This document shows, in pieces, positions 14,524-62,348 of a stretch of 64,000 nucleotides of DNA. Made by a program: the position numbers and the translations under genes. Position 1 is the stretch's first letter, and the number at the start of each line of letters is the position of its first letter. The notes under the pieces were generated by a model. It ran no database searches. It was not told where the DNA came from and saw only the letters and a program-made list of their open reading frames with translations. Origin of the DNA: Chlorokybus atmophyticus (taxonomy: Eukaryota; Plantae; Mesostigma and Chlorokybus algae); NCBI GenBank assembly GCA_009103225.1, contig RHPI01002076.1, positions 150,205 through 214,204 on the forward strand, written 5' to 3'.

Positions 14524-14951
14524 CCAGCTCAACTTGACGCAGTGGAACACAGCCATGGAAGGAGTTAGGAACTCTAGTCGTTGGCTTTGACAACTACAAG
14601 TAACCTGAAACGTGATGTGTCGTAGGTGTGTATGTGTGTTGCATGCCCGCCCTTCGGGCGCAATTGTTGCAAGCATTCGTTCACCTGCCTGCTACAAACA
14701 CTGGCAAAGCATCATCGCCGCAGGTAAGCACCAAATACCTTGCATTTTCCACCACAACCACCACTGCAATCAGCAGCCTGCTGAGCTTGCTGCCCTCCTC
14801 CAAATCTACTGGCTGGCTGGCAGCGAGTTGGCAACATGCTAAAGAGTTACGTGGTAACAGCAGGCAGCGACTCAGGCAGGCTGTTGTCTCTGTTGACAGA
14901 ACTTTTCGTTGCGTCTCAAGTTTGCACTCGTACTTTGTGGCGTCTGGGAGG

Positions 14952-14973
14952 GAGCGAGAGCGAGAGCGAGAGC

Positions 14974-15004
<31 letters not shown>

Positions 15005-15006
15005 CG

Positions 15007-15094
<88 letters not shown>

Positions 15095-15198
15095 NNNNNN
15101 NNNNNNNNNNNNNNNNNNNNNNNNNNNNNNNNNNNNNNNNNNNNNNNNNNNNNNNNNNNNNNNNNNNNNNNNNNNNNNNNNNNNNNNNNNNNNNNNNN

Positions 15199-15252
<54 letters not shown>
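14952..15252. repeat. (AG)n/(GAGAGC)n microsatellite containing an N-gap (15095-15198)
   Basis: Directly visible in the sequence. Confidence 0.95.
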
Positions 15253-15255
<3 letters not shown>

Positions 15256-15429
15256 TGCAACCTCAGTCTGTGCATGAGTCGTGCACAGACTTACCCCCAC
15301 CGAGTGATCAGTGGGGACATGATGTGGATCACCATTCAGTGCCATGCGCTATCTGTATATTTAGGGCTGTATCTCAGACGCGCCATAGCATTGGCACTAG
15401 CACGGCAACTCGTTGGCTTAGTAGTATGG

Positions 15430-16336: not shown

Positions 16337-18890
16337 TCACTCGTCTTCGTGCCGAAACCAGCACCGGTGCGCGCCGTGGCGGCAGGCAGCCAGCGTGCCG
16401 TAGCGGCACATGCGGTCGTAGCGCCGCACTCGCTGTCGCATGTTCAAGTTGTGGTCACCGGCATTACCACCGTGCTGACGTTGTATGTCAACTTGAAACC
16501 TCAGGATGATATCATCATCGTCATCCACCTGTGGCTCAGGCGGCGGGCGCTTGAAAAGTCCGCACTGGCAGCCTGGCCGGCCGTGCTGGTTGTTGGCGTT
16601 GGGACTCTGATTGACATATGCGACGCCGCACTGAACACGCAGACAATAAGTAGTCCAAGTCTGCATGACAACGTGACTCACTTCTAATGTAGGTTGTACG
16701 ATACAACACACGCTCATCATATCAATCAATGCGTGCGCGTGCGTGGATGCTTGAATACTACGCGCATAGTGCGTGCATTGATGTGCATGTGCACGCACAT
16801 CATGTTCGTGCACATGCACACCAACGAACGCACACACTGTGCATGCGCGTACATGCATGCGTGCACAAATCTGGGAACATGTGATGCAATCTGTGTCATG
16901 CAGTGCTTAATAAGCATGCGGTGCGCACCTGATAGCAGAAGGCTGATCTGCAGCGGCACAGCAAGAAGTTGCAGCCGTCAGGGTTCCTTTCCACCATATG
17001 CTTGCAACTCGGACATTGACGCCAATGTTTCTGCTGAGCCAGGTGCAACAGCTGCAAATCTTCTGCCGTCCTGTTTAGAAAACCAAGCAACTTAGAACTG
17101 CTAGATGTTGTGCTCAGCTGTTGTGCTCAGCAAGTGTGTACACAGAGTTATACCTCAGGTGGTCAGGCAGCGCCTGATACTCTTCGCAGGAGTAGCCGGC
17201 GTGCCAGCTGATCCGGCACGAAGCACAAAAAGGGCGGTGGCAGTTGACACAGTTAGTTATGCCTTCCGGGTCAGGAATGTCCATAACAGTATCGCATTGC
17301 GCATACGGGCAGTACACTACGTTCTCCATGCCGGCCTCATCCGCCAGATGTTGGAAGAGAGCCACCTGCTCGGCATCACCTTGAACAATTTCCTGCACAT
17401 CGTCAAGCCCAAAAGCCCACCTGTACAGGTGGTACGCATCTGTGCAGGTACTATGGGACCACATGGATATAGCAACGATACCGCGAAGGATGTTGCTACA
17501 CGCATGCACGCACGCACTTACATGCAACCCGGAATTGCGCATTTGATTGGGTATTTGTGTTGCTTGAGCTCATTGCGGATGTACTCAGCCGCGCAGCAGA
17601 CACAGATGTTGTGTTGGCAGACGCTCGCACGAGCGCTGGTTGAACACTCAGGCATGGCCTCTACATCCAGCGGCAGTGATGGATGGCATGTCCCCTGCAA
17701 ACGACACACGTATTTATGCAAGTTATGACAAGAACAGTGACAATTGTTAGGCGGCATGTGTGAAACACAAAAGAGCTCACCGATGCTGGCACTGATTCAA
17801 GGCAAATCATGCAGTCAGTCAAGTTAGGGTCATCTTCTTCACTTGAGGCCTTCTCCGCGCATGAACCAATTGCTCCCTTGAGCTTGCAATCGTCCAAAAC
17901 CGATGGTTCTGAGATACTTGAACCCACTGCCACACGGAGTTGACGCATGTTGTCAGGAGTTACAACTCCTAACAACTGTACATCAGCTTGTTAACAACCC
18001 GTTCATGTAAGGGCTATATACTAGCCTAGTAGGCTACTAGAACAACATAGTGTGCAGTTCTTATTGTTTTGAGTGTTACCTGTTTTTTCGCCTTCAACTC
18101 CAACCGGCATCGGTCTCATGTAAGTGGCACCACGATCTTGCCACTCGTGCTCGGGAACGGCTGCCAGATACTTGGCGAAATCTTCATCGTGCGCGACAAC
18201 TGTGTGCTGCCTTTGCTCAACTCCTTGCAGCGCCTCTGCCACCTGATGTATGCACAAGCTCATCATGGTGTTGCATGTGCAGCTGATGCAATGGCATGAA
18301 TGAGACTGTATGCTACCTCGCTGTCTCTAATTGCCTGCAGCACTTGAGACAGGGCTTGAATCTGTTCGTCCAGTAAGGATAGGGCAACGTGCCACTCCGA
18401 AAGCTCCAGTGTTGCTGGCGCAACAGTCTTTTCACGTGCTGGCTGACTGCAGCTGCTGGTGACAAGTTTGGCTGCCGAGAAATGTCAGTAGTGAGCATAC
18501 TATGCTCACTAGGCATGCATAGTATACATGCCTGATGCTTAACAAAAAGGGTGCAGTTAGTGATCTGTGGAGCTGCAGCATGACAGACAAGACGCTCTTG
18601 TACTGAACCACAGCTAGCATGCTGTGCTACATGATACATGACCACGCATGTTGCTACCTATTCAAAGATGCATGCACGCAGCAGGCACCCGCATGCACGC
18701 ATAATTGCAAGGGCTCACCAACGTCTTCTTCTGCCAAATCGCCATAGGGAGAAGCACTGTCTTCAGGCTGAAGTTGAAGGCACAGCGCGAATACAGCGTC
18801 CTGCTCCAACTGCCGCTCCGCATGCAGCTCCTGTAGCTGGATCTCCAAAGCAAGGGCATATGCACCGCCACCAGCTGCCACCGCCATCAT
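16337..18890 (-). CDS. RBR E3 ubiquitin ligase (RING1-IBR-RING2) with N-terminal coiled region and C-terminal CCCH finger, copy A, about 523 aa
   Basis: Eight exons: 18890-18719, 18471-18317, 18242-18080, 17986-17781, 17694-17522, 17420-17154, 17070-16929, 16630-16337. All borders are GT/AG, phases are consistent, and the 1572-nt ORF has no internal stop. RING1: CMIC...CQHNICVCC...CAIPGC. IBR: YCPYAQC...CVNCHRPFCASCRISWHAGYSC. RING2: CPSCKHMVERNPDGCNFLLCRCRSAFCYQCG. Confidence 0.88.
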
Positions 18891-23979: not shown

Positions 23980-26341
23980 CTAGACATCTGGTTCATCTTC
24001 ATGGCGAAACCAGCAGCGGTGCATGCCGTAGCGGCAGGCATCTAGATTGCCATAGCGGCACATGCGGTTGTAGCGACGCACTCGCTGTCGAAGGTCCACC
24101 AGCACGTTGTGGGCATCGGCATTTCCAGCGCCGTCATCATCCTCTAACGCCTGCGGGTCAGGCGGCGGGCGGTCGAAAAGTCCACACTGGCAGCCTGGCC
24201 TGCCGTGCTGGTTGTTGGCATTGGCATCCAGATTGATGTACGCGACACCGCACTGAGCATGTAGTAATGAGTTGGCAGCTACATCTTAGCAGATCTCATG
24301 ATGCGTGTCGTTGTGTGTGCATGTGCGCATGCATTAGTGGGTGCACAAGTACATGCGTCCGTGCGTGCGTGTGGGAATCTATCCTCTGGCCATGCAGAAT
24401 TTAGTACACTGCATCGCTGCAGCAGACACCTGATAGCAGAATGCTGACTTGCAGCGGCACATCATGAAGTTGCAGCCGTCCAGGTTCCTCTCCACCATGT
24501 GCTTGCAGTTTGGACAGCGACGCCAAAGTTTTTGCTGAGCCAGGCGCAACACCTGCAGATCTTCTGCAGTTCTGTTCGCAGACCCAACAACTTAACACAA
24601 CAGTCAGCAATGCTAACTGTTGTGTTAACACATACACATGTTGTGACACCTTGAATGGTCAGGCAGCGCCTGGTACTCCTCGCACGAGTAGCCAGCGTGC
24701 CAGGCAGTTTGGCATGTAGCGCAGAAAGGGCGGTGGCAGTTGAAACAGTCAGTCTTGCTTTTGGGGTTGGGTATGTCCATGACGGCCTCGCACTGTGCGT
24801 GCGGGCAGTACACTCTGTTCTTCATGCCAGCCTCCACTGCCAGACGCTGGACGAGAGCCAACCGCTTGGCATCATGTCGAATAACCTTGTTCACATCCTC
24901 AAGACCAAAAGCCCACCTGTACAGGTGGTCAACATGTGCGTACCATGAGACCACAACAGGCGACTAACGTTTGAATGTTGCCTGATTGTTTACACGAGCA
25001 AGCAGTGTAAGTGACTTACTTGCAACCCGGGTGCGCGCATGTGATGGGATACTTGTGTTCATCAAGCTCGATGCGGATGTACTCGGCAACGCACATGGAA
25101 CAGATGTTGTGCTTGCAGCCGCCGGCGCTGCTTGCACGGGCGCTGGTTGAGCACTTGGGCACAGCCGCAATGTCCAGCGGCAACGATGGATGGCAAGTCT
25201 CCTGCAAACCCCAAATATACTTGGGCAGGTATGAGAACAGTTCAACTAGTATGTACAGTGTTTCAAACAACGACAAAGCTCACCGTCAGTGGCACTGATT
25301 CAAGACAAATCATGCAGTCAATCAAGGCCTTTTCCGCGCACAAGCCAACCACTCCCTTACGTTTTTTCAACGGCGATGCCTCTGCCAGAGCCAGTGACAG
25401 AGCCAGTCAGACTCAATGAAAACCACTGCCATAAAGAATGCACCCATCTTATCGGGAGTTTAGCAAAGTTTTGAAACAGCTACGACTGATATTGTGTTGG
25501 TATTGTTCGGGTGTTACCAGTTTCTTCGCCTCCAGACGGTATTGGTCTGGAATAAGTATTGCCATGAACCCGCCACTCATGCTCGGGAACAGCTGCTAAA
25601 TACTTGGCGAACTCAGCGTCGTGCGCGACAACTGTGCGCTGCCTTTCCTCAACCTCATGCATAGCCACTGCCACCTGATGTACGCACCACTTCGGAGTGC
25701 GCTGTTGCTTCTGCAGCGCATGCATATGCATGCACAACACTTTTTCCACAATAATACGCTACCTCGCTGTCCTTGATTGCCTGCTGCACTTGACTTAGGG
25801 CTTGGATCTGTTCGTCAAGCAAGGACAGGGCCTCGTTGCACTCCGACAGCTGCAGTGTTGGCGCAACACTGCAGCCGCTGCTGGTGACATCTTTAGCTGC
25901 CCAGGTATGTCAGTAGCGTACACATGCCAGGTTACCTCTAACAGTACTTTCAGTGACCAATGGAACTCCAAGTGCACCATGAAAGACAATAGGCCGCATG
26001 TTGTCTGTCATGCTGGAGGCAGGCAGGAAGATGCCGGGTTATAGTTCAGTACAAGCCGGGATTTTATTGAACTACAACTTGCTGTGCTACCTGAAACCAT
26101 GAGCCCAAGTTGTTATCTCCTCAAAACTGCTTGCGTGCCTGCGCAGTTCAAGGAGCTCACCGCCAGCGTCTTCCGCTGCTGACTCGCAGTCATAGGGTGG
26201 ATCAGCGTCGTCAGGCTGCAGTTGAAGGCACAGCGCCAAGGCAGCGTCCTGCTCCAGCTGCCGCTGCGCATGGAGCTCCTGCAGCTGGAGCTCCAAAGCA
26301 AGCGCATATGCATCGCCACCATCGCCATCTACCGCCATCAT
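23980..26341 (-). CDS. RBR E3 ubiquitin ligase with C-terminal CCCH finger, copy B, about 477 aa
   Basis: Eight exons: 26341-26161, 25896-25763, 25674-25518, 25381-25284, 25201-25020, 24916-24650, 24571-24430, 24252-23980. Phases are consistent (1434 nt). The frame is open only if exon 4 uses the downstream acceptor ctggcag at 25382. It has the same RING1/IBR/RING2 motifs as copy A plus CRYGNLDACRYGMHRCWFRH. Confidence 0.8.
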
Positions 26342-32952: not shown

Positions 32953-35339
32953 ATGATGGCGGTGGCAGCTGATGGTGGCGATGCATATGTGCTTGCTTTG
33001 GAGCTCCAGCTGCAGGAACTTCATGCCCAGCGTCGGCTGGAGCAGGACGCTGCCTTGGCGCTGTGCCTTCAACTGCAGCCTGAAGACGATGATCCAACCT
33101 TTGGCTGCCAGTTAACAGCCGATGACATTGTCGGTGAGCTCCTTGAACTATGCCAGCCTTGAGAAGACATCAACTTGTGCTCAAGTACATGCAGCACAGC
33201 ATGCAACCTGTGGTTCAGTGCAAGAGCCCGGCTTGTCTGCCTCCAGCATGACGGATAGCACGGGGCGTGCTGTCTGTCATGAATGAGAAGTTCCATTGGT
33301 CACTACCAGTGTTTTCAGGGGTAGCATCAGGCATGTGTATGCTCGCTACTGACATACCTGGGCAGCTAAAGATATCACCAGCAGCGGCTACAGTGTTGCG
33401 CCAATACCACTGCAGCTGTTGGAGTGCAACGATGCCTTGTCCTTGCTTGACGAACAAATTGAAGCCCTCAGTCAAGTGCTGCAGGCAATCAAGGACAGCG
33501 AGGTAGCGTACTACTTAGGCAAAACTGTGGTGCATGCATATGCATGGGCTGCAGCAGCACCATGGTGAGATCGTGCATGCATCAGGTGGCAGTGGCTCTG
33601 CATGAGGTTGAGGAAAGGCAGCACACAATTGTCGCACACGATGTTGAGTTTGCCAAGTATCTAGCAGCTGTTTCCGAGCACGAGTGGAGGGTTCATGGCG
33701 ACAACTTTTCTAGACCGATACCGTCCGGAGGCGAAGAAACCGGTAACACGCCAACACAACCTTAGTTGTAGTTGTTTCAACACTTTGCTCAACTCTCAAC
33801 TCGACAAGATGAGTGCATTCTCTGCGGCAGTGGTTTCAAAGAAATCACTGACTCTGTCACTGGCTCTCTGGCAGAGCCATCGCCGTTGAAGAACCATAAG
33901 GGAGTGGTTGGCTCGTGCGCGGAAAAAGGCCTTGAGTGAAGGCTATAAAGCTGACTTGATTGACTGCATGATTTGTCTTAATCGGTGCCACAGACGGTGA
34001 GCTTTCTCGTGTTTTAAACACTGCAGACACTCGATGGACTGTTCTCAATGCCTGCCCAAGCTTGTCTGAGGTCGCAGGAGACTTGCCATCCATTGTTGCC
34101 GCTGGACATTACGGCAGTGCCCGATTGCTCAACCAGCGCCCGTGCAAGCGGCTGCGAACACAAGATCTGTTTTATGTGCGCGGCTGAGTACATCCGCATT
34201 GAGCTTGACGAACACAAGTATCCCATCAGATGCGCGCACCCGGGTTGCATGTAAGTCACTTACACAGTGTGCTTGTGCTCGCCACAGTGTGCGTGTGCGT
34301 GTAAAACAATCGGCAACAGTAGTCGCCCGGTTTGGTGTGGTCTCATGGTACCTGCGCACATATTCACCAACTGTACAGGTGGATTTTTGGTCTTGACGAT
34401 GTGAACAAGGCTATTCGACATGATGCCAAGCGGTTGGCTCTCGTCCAGCGTCTGGCGGTGGAGGCTGGCATGAAGAACAAAGTGTACTGCCCGCACACAC
34501 AATGCGAGGCCGTGATGGACATACTCAACCCCAAAGGCAAGATTGACTGTTTCAAGTGCCACCGCCCTTTCTGCGCTACATGCCGAACCGCCTGGCACAC
34601 TGGCTACTCGTGCGAAGAGTACCAGGCGCTGCCTGACCACTTGAGGTGGCACACCATGCGCGTACACTTGTCTTTGGAACAACAGCTAGCAATGCTGAGT
34701 TATTGGGTTTTAACAGAACCGCAGAAGATTTGCAGATGCTGCGCCTGGCTCAGCAAAAACTTTGGCGTCGCTGTCCAAATTGCAAGCACATGGTGGAAAG
34801 GAACCCGGTGGGATGCAACTTCATGATGTGCCGTTGCAAATCAGCATTCTGCTATCAGGTGTCTGCCAGTGTTGCGGTGTTTATAAGTACTGGTTGGCCA
34901 TGTTATGCATCCCTGCACACCCACGCACACACGCACGCATGCATGTACTTCAGTAGTACTCGCGTATCCACACATGCATGCGCACGCGGACACACCCAGC
35001 GGCATGCGTGATGAGAGTATGTCATATGCTCCGCTGAGCTGCAACCTCTAATTCTGTCACTCCAATGTCAGTGCGGTGTCGCGTACATCAATCTAGTTGC
35101 CAACGCCAACAACAGCCATGGCAAACCAGGCTGCCAATGTGGACTCTTCGAGCGCCCCGCAGGTAATCGAGGATGGAGATCATCATGATGACGTGGGGAT
35201 GCTGATATGACCGACAACAGGCTCGTGAACCGCCGACAACAAGTCCGTCGTTCCAATCACACGTGCCATTGCGGCAAGCTGACCGCCGCCATGGCATCCA
35301 CCGCTGCTGGTTCGGCATGAAGATGAACGAGATGTCTAG
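32953..35339 (+). pseudogene. RBR-CCCH E3 ligase copy C (frameshifted)
   Basis: Exons 32953-33133, 33366-33502, 33586-33742, ~33809-33987, 34078-34250, 34379-34645, 34717-34858 and 35072-35339 parallel copy B. An extra A in gcggaaaaaggcc (about 33925) gives an in-frame TGA, there is a -1 at cttaatcgg, and the last exon is frameshifted and has lost the CCCH finger. Confidence 0.85.
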
Positions 35340-38800: not shown

Positions 38801-39374
38801 AGTGCTGCCATTGCTGAAACCACGTGGCACACGTCATTGTGCCTGCAGGGCATCATCTCCCAGAAGCAAACAAGTGTGTACGTTCAAGTGCTTGCTTGCA
38901 TGTCATATCGCCAATGATGATCACCGTCATGAGGCAGCTCGAACAGTTGTGGAGTGTAAAGGATGCTGACAATCTGTCGCAGTCAAATCTTTGATTCATG
39001 TAGAGCACTTCTGGCTGACCTTGGTCTTCCTGTCATTGAGTCAACTAAACCTGGCAGGTCTTCTTTCCTTTGGTGTGTTGTGGGGCTTCCGACCAAGAGT
39101 GGTGCGTGGAAAGCGCTGTTGCGCAGTCATAGCGGCGCAAAAGTGTACGACAGTGTTGTAGCGTGATGCTGTGACAATCTGCTATAGTGACAACCTCGCT
39201 GTGAGCAAGTAATGGTGGAACGCTTCAAGCGCTTGCATTGATGACGTCAACTATTGCCCTCATCACCACGGTTGCAAAGTTGTGCATGGTCTGTTGATGG
39301 TAGAAAAAGTGTCAACAGCATGTGTTGTGTGTTGCACTTGTTTCTAACAAACGTCATGAGGATCATTCTCAACT

Positions 39375-40260
39375 ATCTGATGATCACTCCTGAGAAGGAG
39401 TGGCGGGAGCGTGGTGCCACTTACATGAGACCAATACCGGTTGGAGAACAAGGTGAAGCAAACCGGCCGGTAACACCCAAACAGTGCCAACACCATGGAT
39501 TGCTGTTTGCACGCCAATGTACACAACTCTTGGCAAGATACGTGCATTCTCTGTGGCAGTGGCTTGGCTTCAGACAACTCAGAGCCACCTTTGTAAGAAG
39601 AGTCCAAAGCGGTCGGCTCGTGCGCGGAAAAGGCCTCGAGTGAAGAAGACGAACCCAACCCGTGGTTCACTGCATGGTCTGTCTTGCATCAGTGCGGGCA
39701 CCGGTGGGCTGTTTGGTGGTTCCAGCACTTCACGTGATAGTTGTCTCACTTCATATCAACACCGTGTTGATATAGAGTGACTTGCCTAAGTACGTGTGGG
39801 TTTGCAGGATACGTGCCTTCCATCCATCGTTGCCACTGGACAATGCGGCCATGCCAGAGTGCTCAACCAACGCCCGTGCAAACGGCTGCAAACACAACAT
39901 CTGTTCCGGGTGCGCAGCCGGGTACATCCGCATCGAGCTGGCAGAACATAAGTACCCCAGCATGCGTGCGCACCCGGGTTGCATGTACTAAAGTCCGAAG
40001 CACTATTGTGTGTGCATGTTGGCAACATCATCATGATCGTCGCCTGGTACAGAGGTCTCATGTTACAATACCATGAGGTCCTCGCGCACATGTGTGACAC
40101 CTGTACAGGTGGGCTTCTGGGGTTCAAACCCAAACAAGTTGTTGATGTGAAGGAGATCATCATCCAACATGAGGCTGCGGGTTGCTCTCTTCCAGCGTCT
40201 GGCGGCGGACTGGGTGTCCGTCTCAAACTGCCTGGCCAGCCACATCGTGCATTGCATGTA
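39375..40260 (+). pseudogene. RBR E3 ligase copy D (heavily degraded, lacks RING2)
   Basis: EWRERGATYMRPIPVG, CILCGSG...*..GSCAEKASSEED, GCKHNICSGCAAGYIRIELAEHKYP...HPGC, and a broken IBR exon starting ctgtacag|gtgggc at about 40109. Confidence 0.8.
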
Positions 40261-58619: not shown

Positions 58620-61600
58620 TTATGGGACAGGAGATGAATTCCAATAAGCTCGAAGCAACTCGCGGCAGTGCGTAAGATGCCTGTCGGGCTCCCAACTGTT
58701 ATGTTCTGGGCCATACCCTTTCCATTTCACCAAATAGCGAGTTGCGCGTCCTCAACCATTTAGCTTATGGTTCAATATAGCTTCCACCTCGTATTCGAGC
58801 TCGCTGTCCACCTCAACTGGCGGTGGTGGAGGCTGTGTTCTACCGTCTGAGCGGTAAGGTTTCAACAAGTTTACATAAAACACGTTGTGTATACGCACAC
58901 TTGGGGGCAATTGCAGTCGATAAGCGTGCGTACCAACTCTATCAGTGATAGAGAAAGGACCTAACCATCGGGGCAGCAACTTGCGAGCACCCGTACCTTT
59001 GATGGTTATGTTTTTTGCATTCAGCAAAACTTTATCGCCGACATCGAAAGTGGCCATTTTTCGATGTGTATCAGCATAAGCTTTTTGCCTGTCCTGTGCT
59101 TCTGACAGACACAGCTTGGCTCGAGCCAAATTTTCTTGCATATTAGTGGCAAATTCTTTTGCCGCTGGCACAGTCACGGCATGGCGAGGTACACGCAATG
59201 ACGCTGGTGTGTTCGGGCGAATCCCATAATTCAAGAAAAATGGGGTTTCCTTTACACTTTCCTGCCACGCGTTGTTCACAGCGAACTCTGCCATTGGCAA
59301 GTACCTGTCCCAATCAGCATGATTAGGAGCCACATAGTGGCGAAGCATTTCTTCCAGTATTTGATTTGCTCGCTCAGTTTGACCGTCCGTTTGCGGGTGG
59401 AAAGCAGTCGACATGCTTTGTTTTACCCCCAACAATTCACAGACTTCTCGCCAAAACTTGGAGACAAAACGAGGATCACGATCTGTGACAAGTTCACGCG
59501 GTATACCGTGAACGCGAAAGACCGTGGACACAAATAAGTGTGCCAAGTCCCGTGCACTTACAGTTGTGCAACACGGGGCAAAATGCACCATTTTAGTCAA
59601 ACGGTCGACAAAAACCACAATAGCAGTGTATTTAGCTGCTGTTTCAGGTAGGTCAGTAATCAAATCCATACTGACACTATCCCACTTTTGTTCTGGAATT
59701 GCCAATGGTTTAAGCAATCCCGCTTGTTTTTGTCGTAGTGGCTTATTACGTTGACACACGTCACATGTGCGAACATATTGATCCACGTCAGCTGACATTG
59801 ACGGCCACCAGTATAACTGTTGCGCAGATTTGAGTGTTTTGTGTTTCCCCAAATGCCCAGCATACGGCGGGTCATGCACTGAATGTAAGCATTGCTTACG
59901 CAAGTCGCCCGAGTTGGGAATTGCCAACTGCTCCCCTTTATACCACAGATTGCTAACAGCAGTAAGCTGTTGCAAGTTGGTTTGACTGCTAAACCAATCA
60001 TCTGAGTTATAACCTGCGGACACTTCCTTTAAGAAAGGATCTTCAGGCTGTTGTACATTACGCGTACTTCGAGAGCGCGTAAGTGCCAAAAGAGCAGGGC
60101 TGCGACTTAGTGGATCCGCCACATTGGTGCGACCCGGACGGTATTGCCAAGTGAAAGTGAAACGAGAAATGAATTCATTCCACCTAGCTTGCCGCCTCGA
60201 CAGATTTTGTTGCGTATGAAAGAATGTGAGCGGGTTGTGATCAGTAATCACTGAAAACTCCACCCCTTCCAAGTAGCAACGCCATGTGCGCAGCGCGTGC
60301 ACCACCCCGAGCAATTCCTGCTCAGTGGTTGTGTAATTACGTTCAGCAGGAATGAACTTTCTGCTTTCATATGCACATGGTCTGTCATCTTGTAGAAGGA
60401 CTGCCCCACACCCAATGGTGGAAGCATCACTGATCACCACAAAAGGCTTGGTGTGGTCGGGGAAGGCTAACACAGGGGCTTGTGTTAATGCATCTTTAAT
60501 GCGTGTAAAAGCAACCTCGTGTGCCTCCGTCCACACAAATTTAACATCTTTTCTTAGTAAAGATGTTAAAGGGTTTGCCATGCCAGAATATGCTCGCATG
60601 AACTTGCGGAAATAATTGGCTAGCCCCAAGAAAGCACGTAACTGATGTACATCCTTGGGTGGTGGCCAATCCTTTACCGCACACACCTTTTGAGGATCTG
60701 GTTTCAATCCTTCTTTGCCAATCACATGCCCTAAAAAGGGTAGTTCATCCTTTGCAAAGTTGCATTTGGACAGGTTGGCATAGAATTTGTGTTCGCGTAA
60801 CTTAGCTAGAACCAATTCCACATGCCTGTGGTGGTCCTCCCGGGTTTTGCTGAACACAATAATGTCGTCTAGATATACCAGTACAAACTTGTACAATTCA
60901 TCAGCAAATACCGCGTTCATTGCTGTCTGAAATGTAGCCGGTGCATTTGTTAACCCAAATGGTAACACTTTATACTCAAAGTGTCCTAGTGGGGTGCGAA
61001 ATGCAGTTTTTTGTATATCCGACGGGTGGATTTTGATTTGATGATAACCACTGGTCAAATCCAGCGTGCTGAACACTGTTGCACCTGACAGCTTATCAAA
61101 CAAATCATCAATCCGAGGCAAAGGGTATCTGTTTTTCACAGTGACCTTGTTCAACGCACGGTAATCAATACACATGCGTAGCTTGCCATTCTTTTTGGGC
61201 ACAAACAAAATTGGTGCACCAAAAGGAGATATGCTCTTTGTTATTAAACCTTTGTTCAATAACTCTTTGAGCTGTTTTTCCATCTCCGCGTGTTCTAAGG
61301 GACTTAACCTGTATATAGGCCGCCAAGGTGGCTTTGCCCCCTCCTCTAATGGAATGGTATGATGTATGTTTCGATCGGGAGGCAACTCTGGGAGTTCATC
61401 CTGAAATACATCAACGTGTTGTTCCGTAAGTGACTGCACCACAGGGTCACTGATAGCCTGTTCAGCAGGTGTTTCCACCTGTCGTAAGTGCAGTAAGTAT
61501 ACTTCCTCACGTTTACGCATGCAACGTTTCAATTGCATAGCAGAGAGGAGCGGAACATTATCGCGTGGTATACGTGCGAGTACAGATGCTGTTAAAGTCA

Positions 61601-62348
61601 TCCTACGTTTCCCTTTACGAAGGGTGCACGTATTGGCTCGAGAGTCTAATTGTAAACCTGCTTCAGTGTGCCATTGTTCCCCTAAAACAACATCCACCCC
61701 GGGGATACCAATATCCACCACGATGAAGGCTGGTCGGGTTATATGGCCATTAATAACAAAACGCCCTTTTACCTCTCCCATTGCATTGAGAATGGAACCA
61801 GCAGCACGTACGTATGACGTGATTGGTGTGAAAGGAGTGTTATTACGTTTCACCCAAGCATGTTCAACAAAGTTATGGTTTGCACCAGTATCAATCAATG
61901 CTGTACATGGTGTATTCATAAGTTGACTCTCAAATCTCCATTTGAGTGGCACTGAGTGACCATCAAATGTAGCTAATGTTGGAGTGCCGTGATTGGTAGC
62001 AGACTTGATCAAGATCACTTGCAATGGTGAAGCTCCTGTATCTTTGCGTGAGAGTTGCATGATTACTTCTCCCCCTTTCAACAATCGTGACCACGGGCCA
62101 TGATATCGAGGGATAACTACACATGCAGTAACAGCATGTTGTAATTGCAACTTGTGTAAGTGCGTAACAGCAATTACTAATTCAGAGAATGGAACATTGA
62201 TTAAAACACAACCGTTTGCATTTCTTAACACAGGTGGTGTGCTCATATCAGTCCATACATCTGATACATCACAAAGAGAGGAAACTTTATCAAGAAGTAC
62301 AGAGTTTTTAAAGTCGTTCTGCTCGACTAAGCTACCAACCACGGACAA
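58620..62348 (-). CDS. Pol polyprotein (Dam-like N-terminal segment, aspartic protease, RT, RNase H, integrase, chromodomain)
   Basis: ORF 62348-58752 carries ALIDTGA, LRMCIDYRALN, VYLDDII, SDAS and the integrase HHCC/DDE motifs. The chromodomain (YEVEAIL...[16 protein letters not shown]) continues in frame past the TGA at 58754-58752 to a TAA at 58620. Confidence 0.93.

Follow-up and report, generated by a model that had tools for sequence, protein, structure and literature searches.

The stretch of DNA considered here, 64,000 nucleotides from the alga Chlorokybus atmophyticus (assembly GCA_009103225.1, contig RHPI01002076.1, positions 150,205 to 214,204 of the forward strand; hereafter the window, whose own numbering is used throughout), is eukaryotic DNA with GT-AG introns and 51% G+C, and it holds a cluster of genes for RBR ubiquitin ligases, i.e., enzymes built on a RING1-IBR-RING2 core. 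A preliminary description of the window had pointed out that two of the copies, here called A and B, carry behind RING2 an acidic linker and a motif of the form C-x7-C-x6-C-x3-H, and had proposed a lineage-expanded family of candidate RNA-guided or RNA-sensing RBR ligases that end in a CCCH zinc finger, a type that usually binds RNA. Copies A and B are paralogues arranged in tandem and belong to an RBR family conserved in green algae; the nature and possible role of their C-terminal tails are the subject of this work.

Copy A (Chlat1/1744; public protein P0001) lies on the minus strand at 18890..16337 and is composed of eight exons (18890-18719, 18471-18317, 18242-18080, 17926-17781, 17694-17522, 17420-17154, 17070-16929, and 16630-16337) that encode 503 amino acids from the first ATG, with the stop codon at 16339-16337. 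All seven introns have GT..AG ends, the frame runs unbroken through the 503 codons, and the search of a large protein library returned P0001 (eukprot jgi/Chlat1/1744, 502 residues), which is identical to our model except that it lacks the first Met. The interval at 16337-16630 is the last of the eight exons and contains, in order, the second half of RING2, the acidic linker with its DDDDD run, a basic lead-in, the finger and the stop codon. Spliced contigs of X1, a single public run whose kind we guessed to be RNA, are 100% identical to copy A and confirm four of its introns (16631-16928, 17071-17153, 17421-17521, and 17927-18079), with joints at 16630/16929, 17070/17154, 17420/17522, and 17926/18080. 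Since these contigs skip exactly the intron predicted between exons 7 and 8, the join of the last two exons is real and in the predicted frame.

Copy B (Chlat1/1745), also on the minus strand at 26341..23980, has eight exons like those of copy A (26341-26161, 25896-25763, 25674-25518, 25381-25284, 25201-25020, 24916-24650, 24571-24430, and 24252-23980) and encodes 477 amino acids in our model. The public model of this gene, P0011 (416 amino acids), keeps the tail but departs from ours within 25284-25674, where it takes part of exon 3 in a different frame and leaves out exon 4, and is thereby left without the first C-x2-C of RING1. The eight-exon model homologous to copy A preserves both the frame and a full RING1, and the joint in copy A that is equivalent to the exon 3-exon 4 joint of copy B is RNA-supported. 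The whole-protein analyses described below used the public proteins P0001 and P0011, with copy B otherwise treated by single exons.

Two further copies lie on the plus strand. Copy C (32953..35339, annotated as gene Chlat1/1746), when read with the homologous splice sites, is a pseudogene with frameshifts and stop codons in exon 4 and, in its last exon, two in-frame stops in the linker as well as deletions of 4 nt and 1 nt within the former finger. Fragment D (39374..39982), found when the exons of copy A were compared with the window by tblastn, is the relic of a fourth copy, of which exons 3-5 remain with a stop codon. Both are inverted relative to A and B, a cluster history of duplication, inversion and decay. 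The expansion first proposed is therefore modest locally, with two intact genes, one pseudogene and one fragment.

The RBR core and the C-terminal tail

The core of copy A can be followed exon by exon on the minus strand. RING1 (17522..17810) was read from the exon translations, with a C-x2-C at the end of exon 4 and C-x-H-x2-C-x2-C ... C-x4-C in exon 5; all eight C3HC4 ligands are readable in these two exons, with a long insert of approximately 32 residues separating the first two ligand pairs. P0001 has no Pfam RING match, and on the Volvocales orthologues (introduced below) zf-C3HC4 gives weak, sub-threshold Pfam matches (E-values of 4e-4 to 3e-3). The IBR domain occupies exon 6 (17154..17420), where PF01485 (IBR, C6HC) matches with an E of 5.4e-11 for the single exon and 6.8e-14 for P0001 (52 bits vs. 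a cut-off of 24.3), and it also matches the IBR domains of RNF31, ARIH1/2 and parkin in the PDB. RING2 (Rcat) extends over 16553..17070, comprising exon 7 and the first 26 codons of exon 8, and closes with the family-invariant A-x-N-x-H-G-x-P-x-C-x-C-x-L-F. The predicted catalytic residue is Cys391 of P0001 (codon 16973-16971, motif D-G-C-N-F), which in pairwise alignment falls on the RNF216 RING2 position at which the chains of 8eb0 and 7m4n show Ala; since this is the active-site position of RNF216, Cys391 is most reasonably the active-site cysteine. A profile of the family core matches every one of the solved RBR families, with ARIH1 (E 1.6e-13) and RNF216 (E 6.8e-13) as well as ARIH2, parkin, HOIL-1, HOIP and CUL9, with coverage of RING2 in ARIH1, parkin, HOIL-1 and HOIP. 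The assignment of the copies to the RBR ligases in the preliminary description is borne out by the IBR match, by this core profile and by the position of Cys391, and copies A and B are thus predicted to encode RBR ligases with the active-site cysteine in place.

In Chlorokybus, as in three relatives from metagenomes (P0004, P0010, and P0021), the active-site Cys-Asn is followed by Phe (C-N-F), and in the Volvocales it is followed by His (C-N-H); the two groups also differ in finger spacing. The absence of His does not disqualify the Chlorokybus proteins, since RNF216 has Arg at this position (C-N-R-M). The Phe would fit an explanation in which the terminal finger recognizes a nucleic acid or an ADP-ribose polymer as the very thing that is modified or sensed, such that a non-protein substrate would be ubiquitylated or the ligase would be activated by RNA. 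The analogy here is with RBR and related ligases that modify non-protein substrates, e.g., HOIL-1, which a preprint describes as forming oxyester linkages on polysaccharides (bioRxiv 10.1101/2022.11.13.516300). We regard this explanation as improbable, as RNF216 also lacks the His and yet is an ordinary protein and ubiquitin ligase.

Ahead of the core lie two helical motifs whose conservation extends from Chlorokybus to Volvox. They read L-A-L-x-L-Q-x-x-E-L and H-D-x-x-F-A-x-x-L-A...E-x-W (P0001 residues 8-40 and 120-140) and are encoded by copy A exons 1 and 3 (18890-18719 and 18242-18080, minus strand). By eye the N-terminal helices of P0001 resemble MIU/UIM-like ubiquitin-binding helices (L-A-x-x-L-Q-x-x-E). 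We do not claim a ubiquitin-binding motif, and a profile of these helical motifs gave no significant match when searched against the PDB.

Behind RING2, the tail of copy A consists of the acidic linker (16439..16552, minus strand) and a segment at 16340..16438 on the same strand that comprises a basic lead-in (R-Q-R-V-R-R-Y-D-R-M), the finger and an acidic end (E-D-E). A six-frame pattern search located C-x7-C-x6-C-x3-H at 16408-16349 in copy A and at 24060-24001 in copy B, both on the minus strand, with the residues as originally quoted. To compare A with B, the ratio of non-synonymous to synonymous substitution (dN/dS) was calculated segment by segment by the Nei-Gojobori method. The lead-in and finger give a dN/dS of 0.16, with 8.5 synonymous vs. 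6.5 non-synonymous changes over 33 codons; the RING2 half of the last exon gives 0.18, and the linker gives 1.2 together with an indel of 12 residues. The finger is under purifying selection and the linker looks neutral, in agreement with the initial remark that the finger is conserved and the linker divergent. Across the family the linker varies both in sequence and in length, from about 35 to more than 150 residues. The finger is retained in the living copies and decayed in the dead copy C.

The bare pattern carries less weight than its conservation. The six-frame search found eight further loose C/H matches in junk frames of the window, and since such matches are not rare there, the evidence for the finger is its conservation and not the pattern as such. 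These eight matches speak for an explanation in which the Cys/His pattern would be a functionless chance feature of a disordered tail or an artefact of annotation. The low dN/dS of the finger, and the fact that it has decayed only in the pseudogene, speak against it.

Relatives in other green algae and the identity of the tail

A profile of the two Chlorokybus last exons, searched against 1.84 billion representative proteins, recovered P0001 and a further seven proteins in which the RING2 ending is the same, the acidic linker is variable and the terminus has the motif C...C...C-W-[FH]-x-H; two of these seven are hypothetical proteins of Chlamydomonas sp. UWO241. Two unrelated matches also appeared at E up to 0.001, namely a tick protein of 2,887 amino acids and a C2H2 zinc-finger protein. 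Full-length orthologues are present in Volvox africanus (568 amino acids), Astrephomene gubernaculifera (565 amino acids) and Edaphochlamys debaryana (532 amino acids). These Volvocales orthologues were reached only with an alignment headed by one of the UWO241 Chlamydomonas proteins, 284 residues long, in a search that also supplied further UWO241 paralogues and metagenomic proteins; homologue searches with P0001, or with an alignment headed by P0001, returned only the three local paralogues and distant plant RBRs. All relatives are labelled either “hypothetical” or “RBR-type E3 ubiquitin transferase,” and none has a CCCH annotation. The N-terminal helical motifs and a Ser-rich RING1 insert are common to the Chlorokybus and Volvocales proteins, so the whole architecture is orthologous across a streptophyte and chlorophytes. 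The family was first described as lineage-expanded. As the same design occurs in Chlorokybus (a streptophyte) and in the Volvocales (chlorophytes), with members in Volvox, Astrephomene, Edaphochlamys and UWO241, we reject an invention specific to the Chlorokybus lineage.

Fourteen tails were aligned, two from Chlorokybus and 12 from other sources, and the named species among them number at least five. All 14 have the three Cys, the His and one Gly without exception, and the Trp is nearly invariant. Half of the 12 non-Chlorokybus tails have a middle spacer of five residues (five are C-x8-C-x5-C-x3-H and one is C-x11-C-x5-C-x3-H) with a core of the C-P-[YF]-G-x-x-C-x-F-x-H type. The other six are C-x8-C-x6-C-x3-H, and Chlorokybus has C-x7-C-x6-C-x3-H, with a middle spacer one residue over the canonical length. 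Set against the CCCH spacing C-x(6-14)-C-x(4-5)-C-x3-H, in which Gly and aromatic residues surround the second and third Cys, the x5 tails fit and the x6 tails are one residue longer, and both the Gly and the W-F that follows the third Cys are conserved. Some relatives (Pleodorina P0028, P0025, and P0027) have no tail, and these may be truncated models or losses.

Several observations on individual relatives can be recorded here. The Antarctic Chlamydomonas sp. UWO241 has its own, independent expansion of the family with at least six paralogues (P0003, P0027, P0029, P0009, P0030, and P0031); P0003, P0027 and P0029 lie on one contig of 442,601 bp, several of the paralogues are truncated, and one is fused to armadillo and leucine-rich repeats. 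P0021 is encoded on an ENA metagenome scaffold (L001, 13 kb) at 567-1679 by a single uninterrupted open reading frame (ORF) of 370 codons, has a hydrophobic N-terminus immediately before RING1, and adjoins an ORF of 1,422 codons without a Pfam match. P0007/P0018 (ENA metagenome) is a C2H2 multi-zinc-finger protein without an RBR that carries two C-x8/9-C-x6-C-W-Y-x-H fingers, and these share the unusual x6 middle spacer and the C-W-aromatic core with the Chlorokybus tail.

The identity of the tail was approached by profile comparison. Searched against the PDB, the profile of the 14 tails gave five sequences at E up to 10, all of them CCCH fingers and all with the four ligands aligned: TIS11d (1rgo, E 6.8e-6), Roquin-1 (8rhs and 4txa, E 0.0069 and 0.13), Tma46 (7rr5, E 0.012) and MEX-5 (6pmg, E 0.09). 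As a control, the same profile scores no more than 8 bits on every Cys/His-rich junk frame of the window. A profile built from the 12 non-Chlorokybus tails finds copy A at an E of 1e-7 and copy B at 1e-6 among 1,729 six-frame peptides of the window; the next in rank is the decayed copy C at 0.045, and all others are at 0.14 or worse. Look-alikes of the last exon by a language model are mostly zf-CCCH clusters (0.78-0.86), which we treat as leads only.

A number of observations weigh against reading the tail as a CCCH finger, and in particular as one that targets RNA. No Pfam CCCH model scores above its cut-off in any member, with single exons and 16 relatives included; the best scores are 11.7-15.8 bits for PF18044 (cut-off 24.6) and, in P0003, 15.2 bits for PF21457 (cut-off 27). 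The last exon, searched singly by phmmer against the PDB, has no match up to an E of 10. Of the two positions for aromatic stacking, one (second Cys +2) lacks conservation. From the 14-sequence alignment, AlphaFold modelled the tail with moderate confidence, with a predicted local distance difference test (pLDDT) score of about 80 in the finger and a mean of 69 (a model of the last exon on a two-sequence alignment was useless, with a pLDDT of 34), and Foldseek (pdb) and VIA-align (pdb_via_wide) found no match for the 41-residue tail model, as expected for so small a model without regular secondary structure. With regard to expression, the X1 contig ends at 16482, which is 74 nt before the finger and leaves the finger codons outside it, and RNA support covers copy A only, with none for copy B. 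Of the in-frame transcription on which the preliminary description had made its proposal depend, the join into the last exon is therefore confirmed by RNA, while the contig stops short of the finger itself. This family has one finger, and where a CCCH finger stands alone its binding to RNA is often weak or gives way to binding of proteins or poly(ADP-ribose). Finally, no experiment on any family member was found in the literature.

The preliminary description had named failure against CCCH profiles as a reason to give up its proposal. The tails do fail the Pfam models, at 11.7-15.8 bits vs. 24.6, while the 14-tail profile matches solved CCCH fingers, and by this profile homology we take the tail to be a true, if divergent, C3H1-type finger that escapes the standard libraries. 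The failure of the Pfam models and the position of the finger codons outside the RNA contig would also suit a chance pattern. Four ligands that are invariant in 14 proteins from at least five named species, a profile that matches solved CCCH fingers only, and the E of 1e-7 obtained with the 12-tail profile do not. On these grounds, together with the constraint seen between A and B, we reject the chance motif; this explanation is very improbable and nearly excluded. That a real CCCH finger is fused to an active-looking RBR we consider highly probable.

Proposed role of the finger

Our reading of copies A and B is that they encode green-algal RBR ligases whose terminal CCCH finger targets RNA, a statement that, taken as a whole, we hold to be evenly balanced. 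The RBR core would accept ubiquitin from an E2 on Cys391 and would then hand it to the substrate, and the terminal finger, on its flexible acidic tether, would act as the targeting module. The finger would most probably contact single-stranded RNA or an RNA-protein particle and in this way bring the ligase to RNA-bound proteins. The enzyme would then be, within the RBR class, what makorin and roquin are among the RING-type ubiquitin ligases that bind RNA. As the target, RNA or an RNA-protein particle is favored since the solved relatives are RNA-binding, the lead-in is basic, and the aromatic pair after the third Cys is conserved. The way in which TIS11d-type fingers hold RNA is presumably matched by the basic lead-in ahead of the first Cys and by the W-F behind the third. 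Judged from the sequence, binding of RNA by the finger itself falls at, or somewhat short of, the midpoint between likely and unlikely. A broader version of this reading, which we offer tentatively, would have an ancient green-lineage RBR family (Chlorokybus and Volvocales, with no finger in the nearest land-plant relatives) that reads RNA by a cryptic C-terminal CCCH finger and so links ubiquitin transfer of the thioester type to targets bound to RNA, as the first RBR-class CCCH RNA-binding ligase, possibly activated by RNA or with a non-protein substrate.

A real zinc finger at this position could also act inside the ubiquitin reaction, where it would bind the acceptor or substrate protein or serve as an autoinhibitory element appended to RING2, comparable to the helix after RNF216 RING2, the LDD of HOIP or the Ariadne domain of ARIH1. 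The elements that determine RBR specificity and regulation typically lie directly after RING2, which counts for this explanation. RNF216, with the acidic segment behind its RING2 included, gives the best alignment to the RING2 and post-RING2 region, the acidic linker could bend back onto the basic finger, and the finger is single and without one of the conserved aromatic positions, all of which would suit an element of the reaction itself. However, a linker that evolves neutrally and ranges in length from about 35 to over 150 residues accords better with a recognition module on a tether than with a fixed catalytic appendage, and the nearest solved relatives are all RNA-associated CCCH fingers. 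We consider a role inside the reaction unlikely, and the RNA-targeting finger remains our preferred reading.

Two other features of the window lie outside the RBR cluster. A long (GA)n/(CT)n microsatellite at 14900-15300 is broken by an assembly gap of N bases and gives rise to spurious Glu-Arg and Ser-Leu repeat ORFs. An intact pol ORF of the Ty3/chromovirus type, 1,198 codons in length, is found at 58752-62348 on the minus strand and includes protease, reverse transcriptase, RNase H, integrase and an SH3-like chromodomain region.

Comparison with known systems

Among solved RBRs, the algal proteins share with RNF216 (TRIAD3) and ARIH1 the RING1-IBR-RING2 core and an active-site Cys in G-C-N-x-[ML]-x-C. 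The likeness to RNF216 goes further, in that RNF216 also has no His after Cys-Asn, a similar RING2 end (P-G-x-x-C-x-x-C...C-x-L-W-like) and then an acidic segment. Neither RNF216 nor ARIH1 has a CCCH finger, and their sequences resemble the algal ones in the RBR core only (E 1e-13 by the family profile). ARIH1 has its Ariadne domain and RNF216 has SUMO-interacting motifs and a C-terminal helix.

The nearest named relatives in the large protein database are Plant II-type land-plant RBRs with the architecture RVT_3-RING-IBR (Carya P0013 and Camellia P0014), a kinship given by E-value ranking (E 1e-18 to 1e-25, with 29-30% identity over the RBR core). They have a similar RING2 ending, C-Q-C-x-[FL]-[WF], but differ at both ends of the protein: an RNase H-like (RVT_3) domain stands at the N-terminus and the C-terminal finger is missing, where the algal proteins carry helical motifs in the N-terminal part and, at the other end, the CCCH tail. 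Four RBR subfamilies have been distinguished in green plants, of which Plant II is described without extra domains and with no member listed for Chlamydomonas reinhardtii (Marin, 2010, PMC2904391). Fusions of an RBR core with RNA-handling modules are known from the Plant I/Helicase subfamily, i.e., the DEAH11/12-like proteins (PMC2904391). The algal proteins may be alike in this respect, but the modules of the subfamily are N-terminal (helicase, KH, RRM) and not a C-terminal CCCH finger. A metagenomic protein of 701 amino acids, P0019, combines the classical RNA-binding domains RRM_1 and KH_DEAH11 with RING and IBR, has no helicase and is distant from the algal family (E 5.7e-6).

With respect to the finger, the best solved match, TIS11d/TTP (1rgo), has the pattern C-x8-C-x5-C-x3-H, a C-P-Y-G-x-x-C-x-F-x-H core and a basic/aromatic lead-in that resemble the algal tails. 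It differs in having two tandem fingers that read UAUU repeats, whereas the algal tail has one finger, with spacers of x7 and x6 in Chlorokybus. The ubiquitin ligases that already combine a ligase domain with CCCH fingers are the makorins and roquin-1/2, and the Roquin-1 finger is itself among the PDB matches of the tail profile. Such CCCH-bearing ubiquitin ligases that bind RNA (RBULs) are described as RING-type (PMC5707401). Makorins and roquins use a canonical, E2-activating RING and not an RBR with a thioester intermediate, and their fingers are N-terminal to the RING or far from it and work with other RNA-binding domains (ROQ, several fingers).

The initial remark that an RBR with a C-terminal CCCH finger had not been characterized is upheld, in that our literature searches on RBR/IBR with CCCH, made within one searchable library of papers, returned no description of this architecture and no relative is annotated with a CCCH domain. 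The standard domain libraries miss the finger in every member, so that InterPro/CDART architecture searches would wrongly report the combination as absent. To our knowledge, work on RBR ligases has dealt almost wholly with 14 human enzymes, and a classical RNA-binding domain is present in none of them. We infer an RNA link for the algal proteins and view the RBR with a C-terminal CCCH finger as a variant within a known enzyme family, one that is old but had gone undescribed. At about 500 amino acids, and with orthologues in Volvox, Astrephomene and Edaphochlamys, the protein is tractable for asking whether RNA recruits or regulates an RBR. If our reading is correct, the CCCH finger that this conserved algal RBR carries on its tether would add a new means of targeting a thioester-forming ligase.

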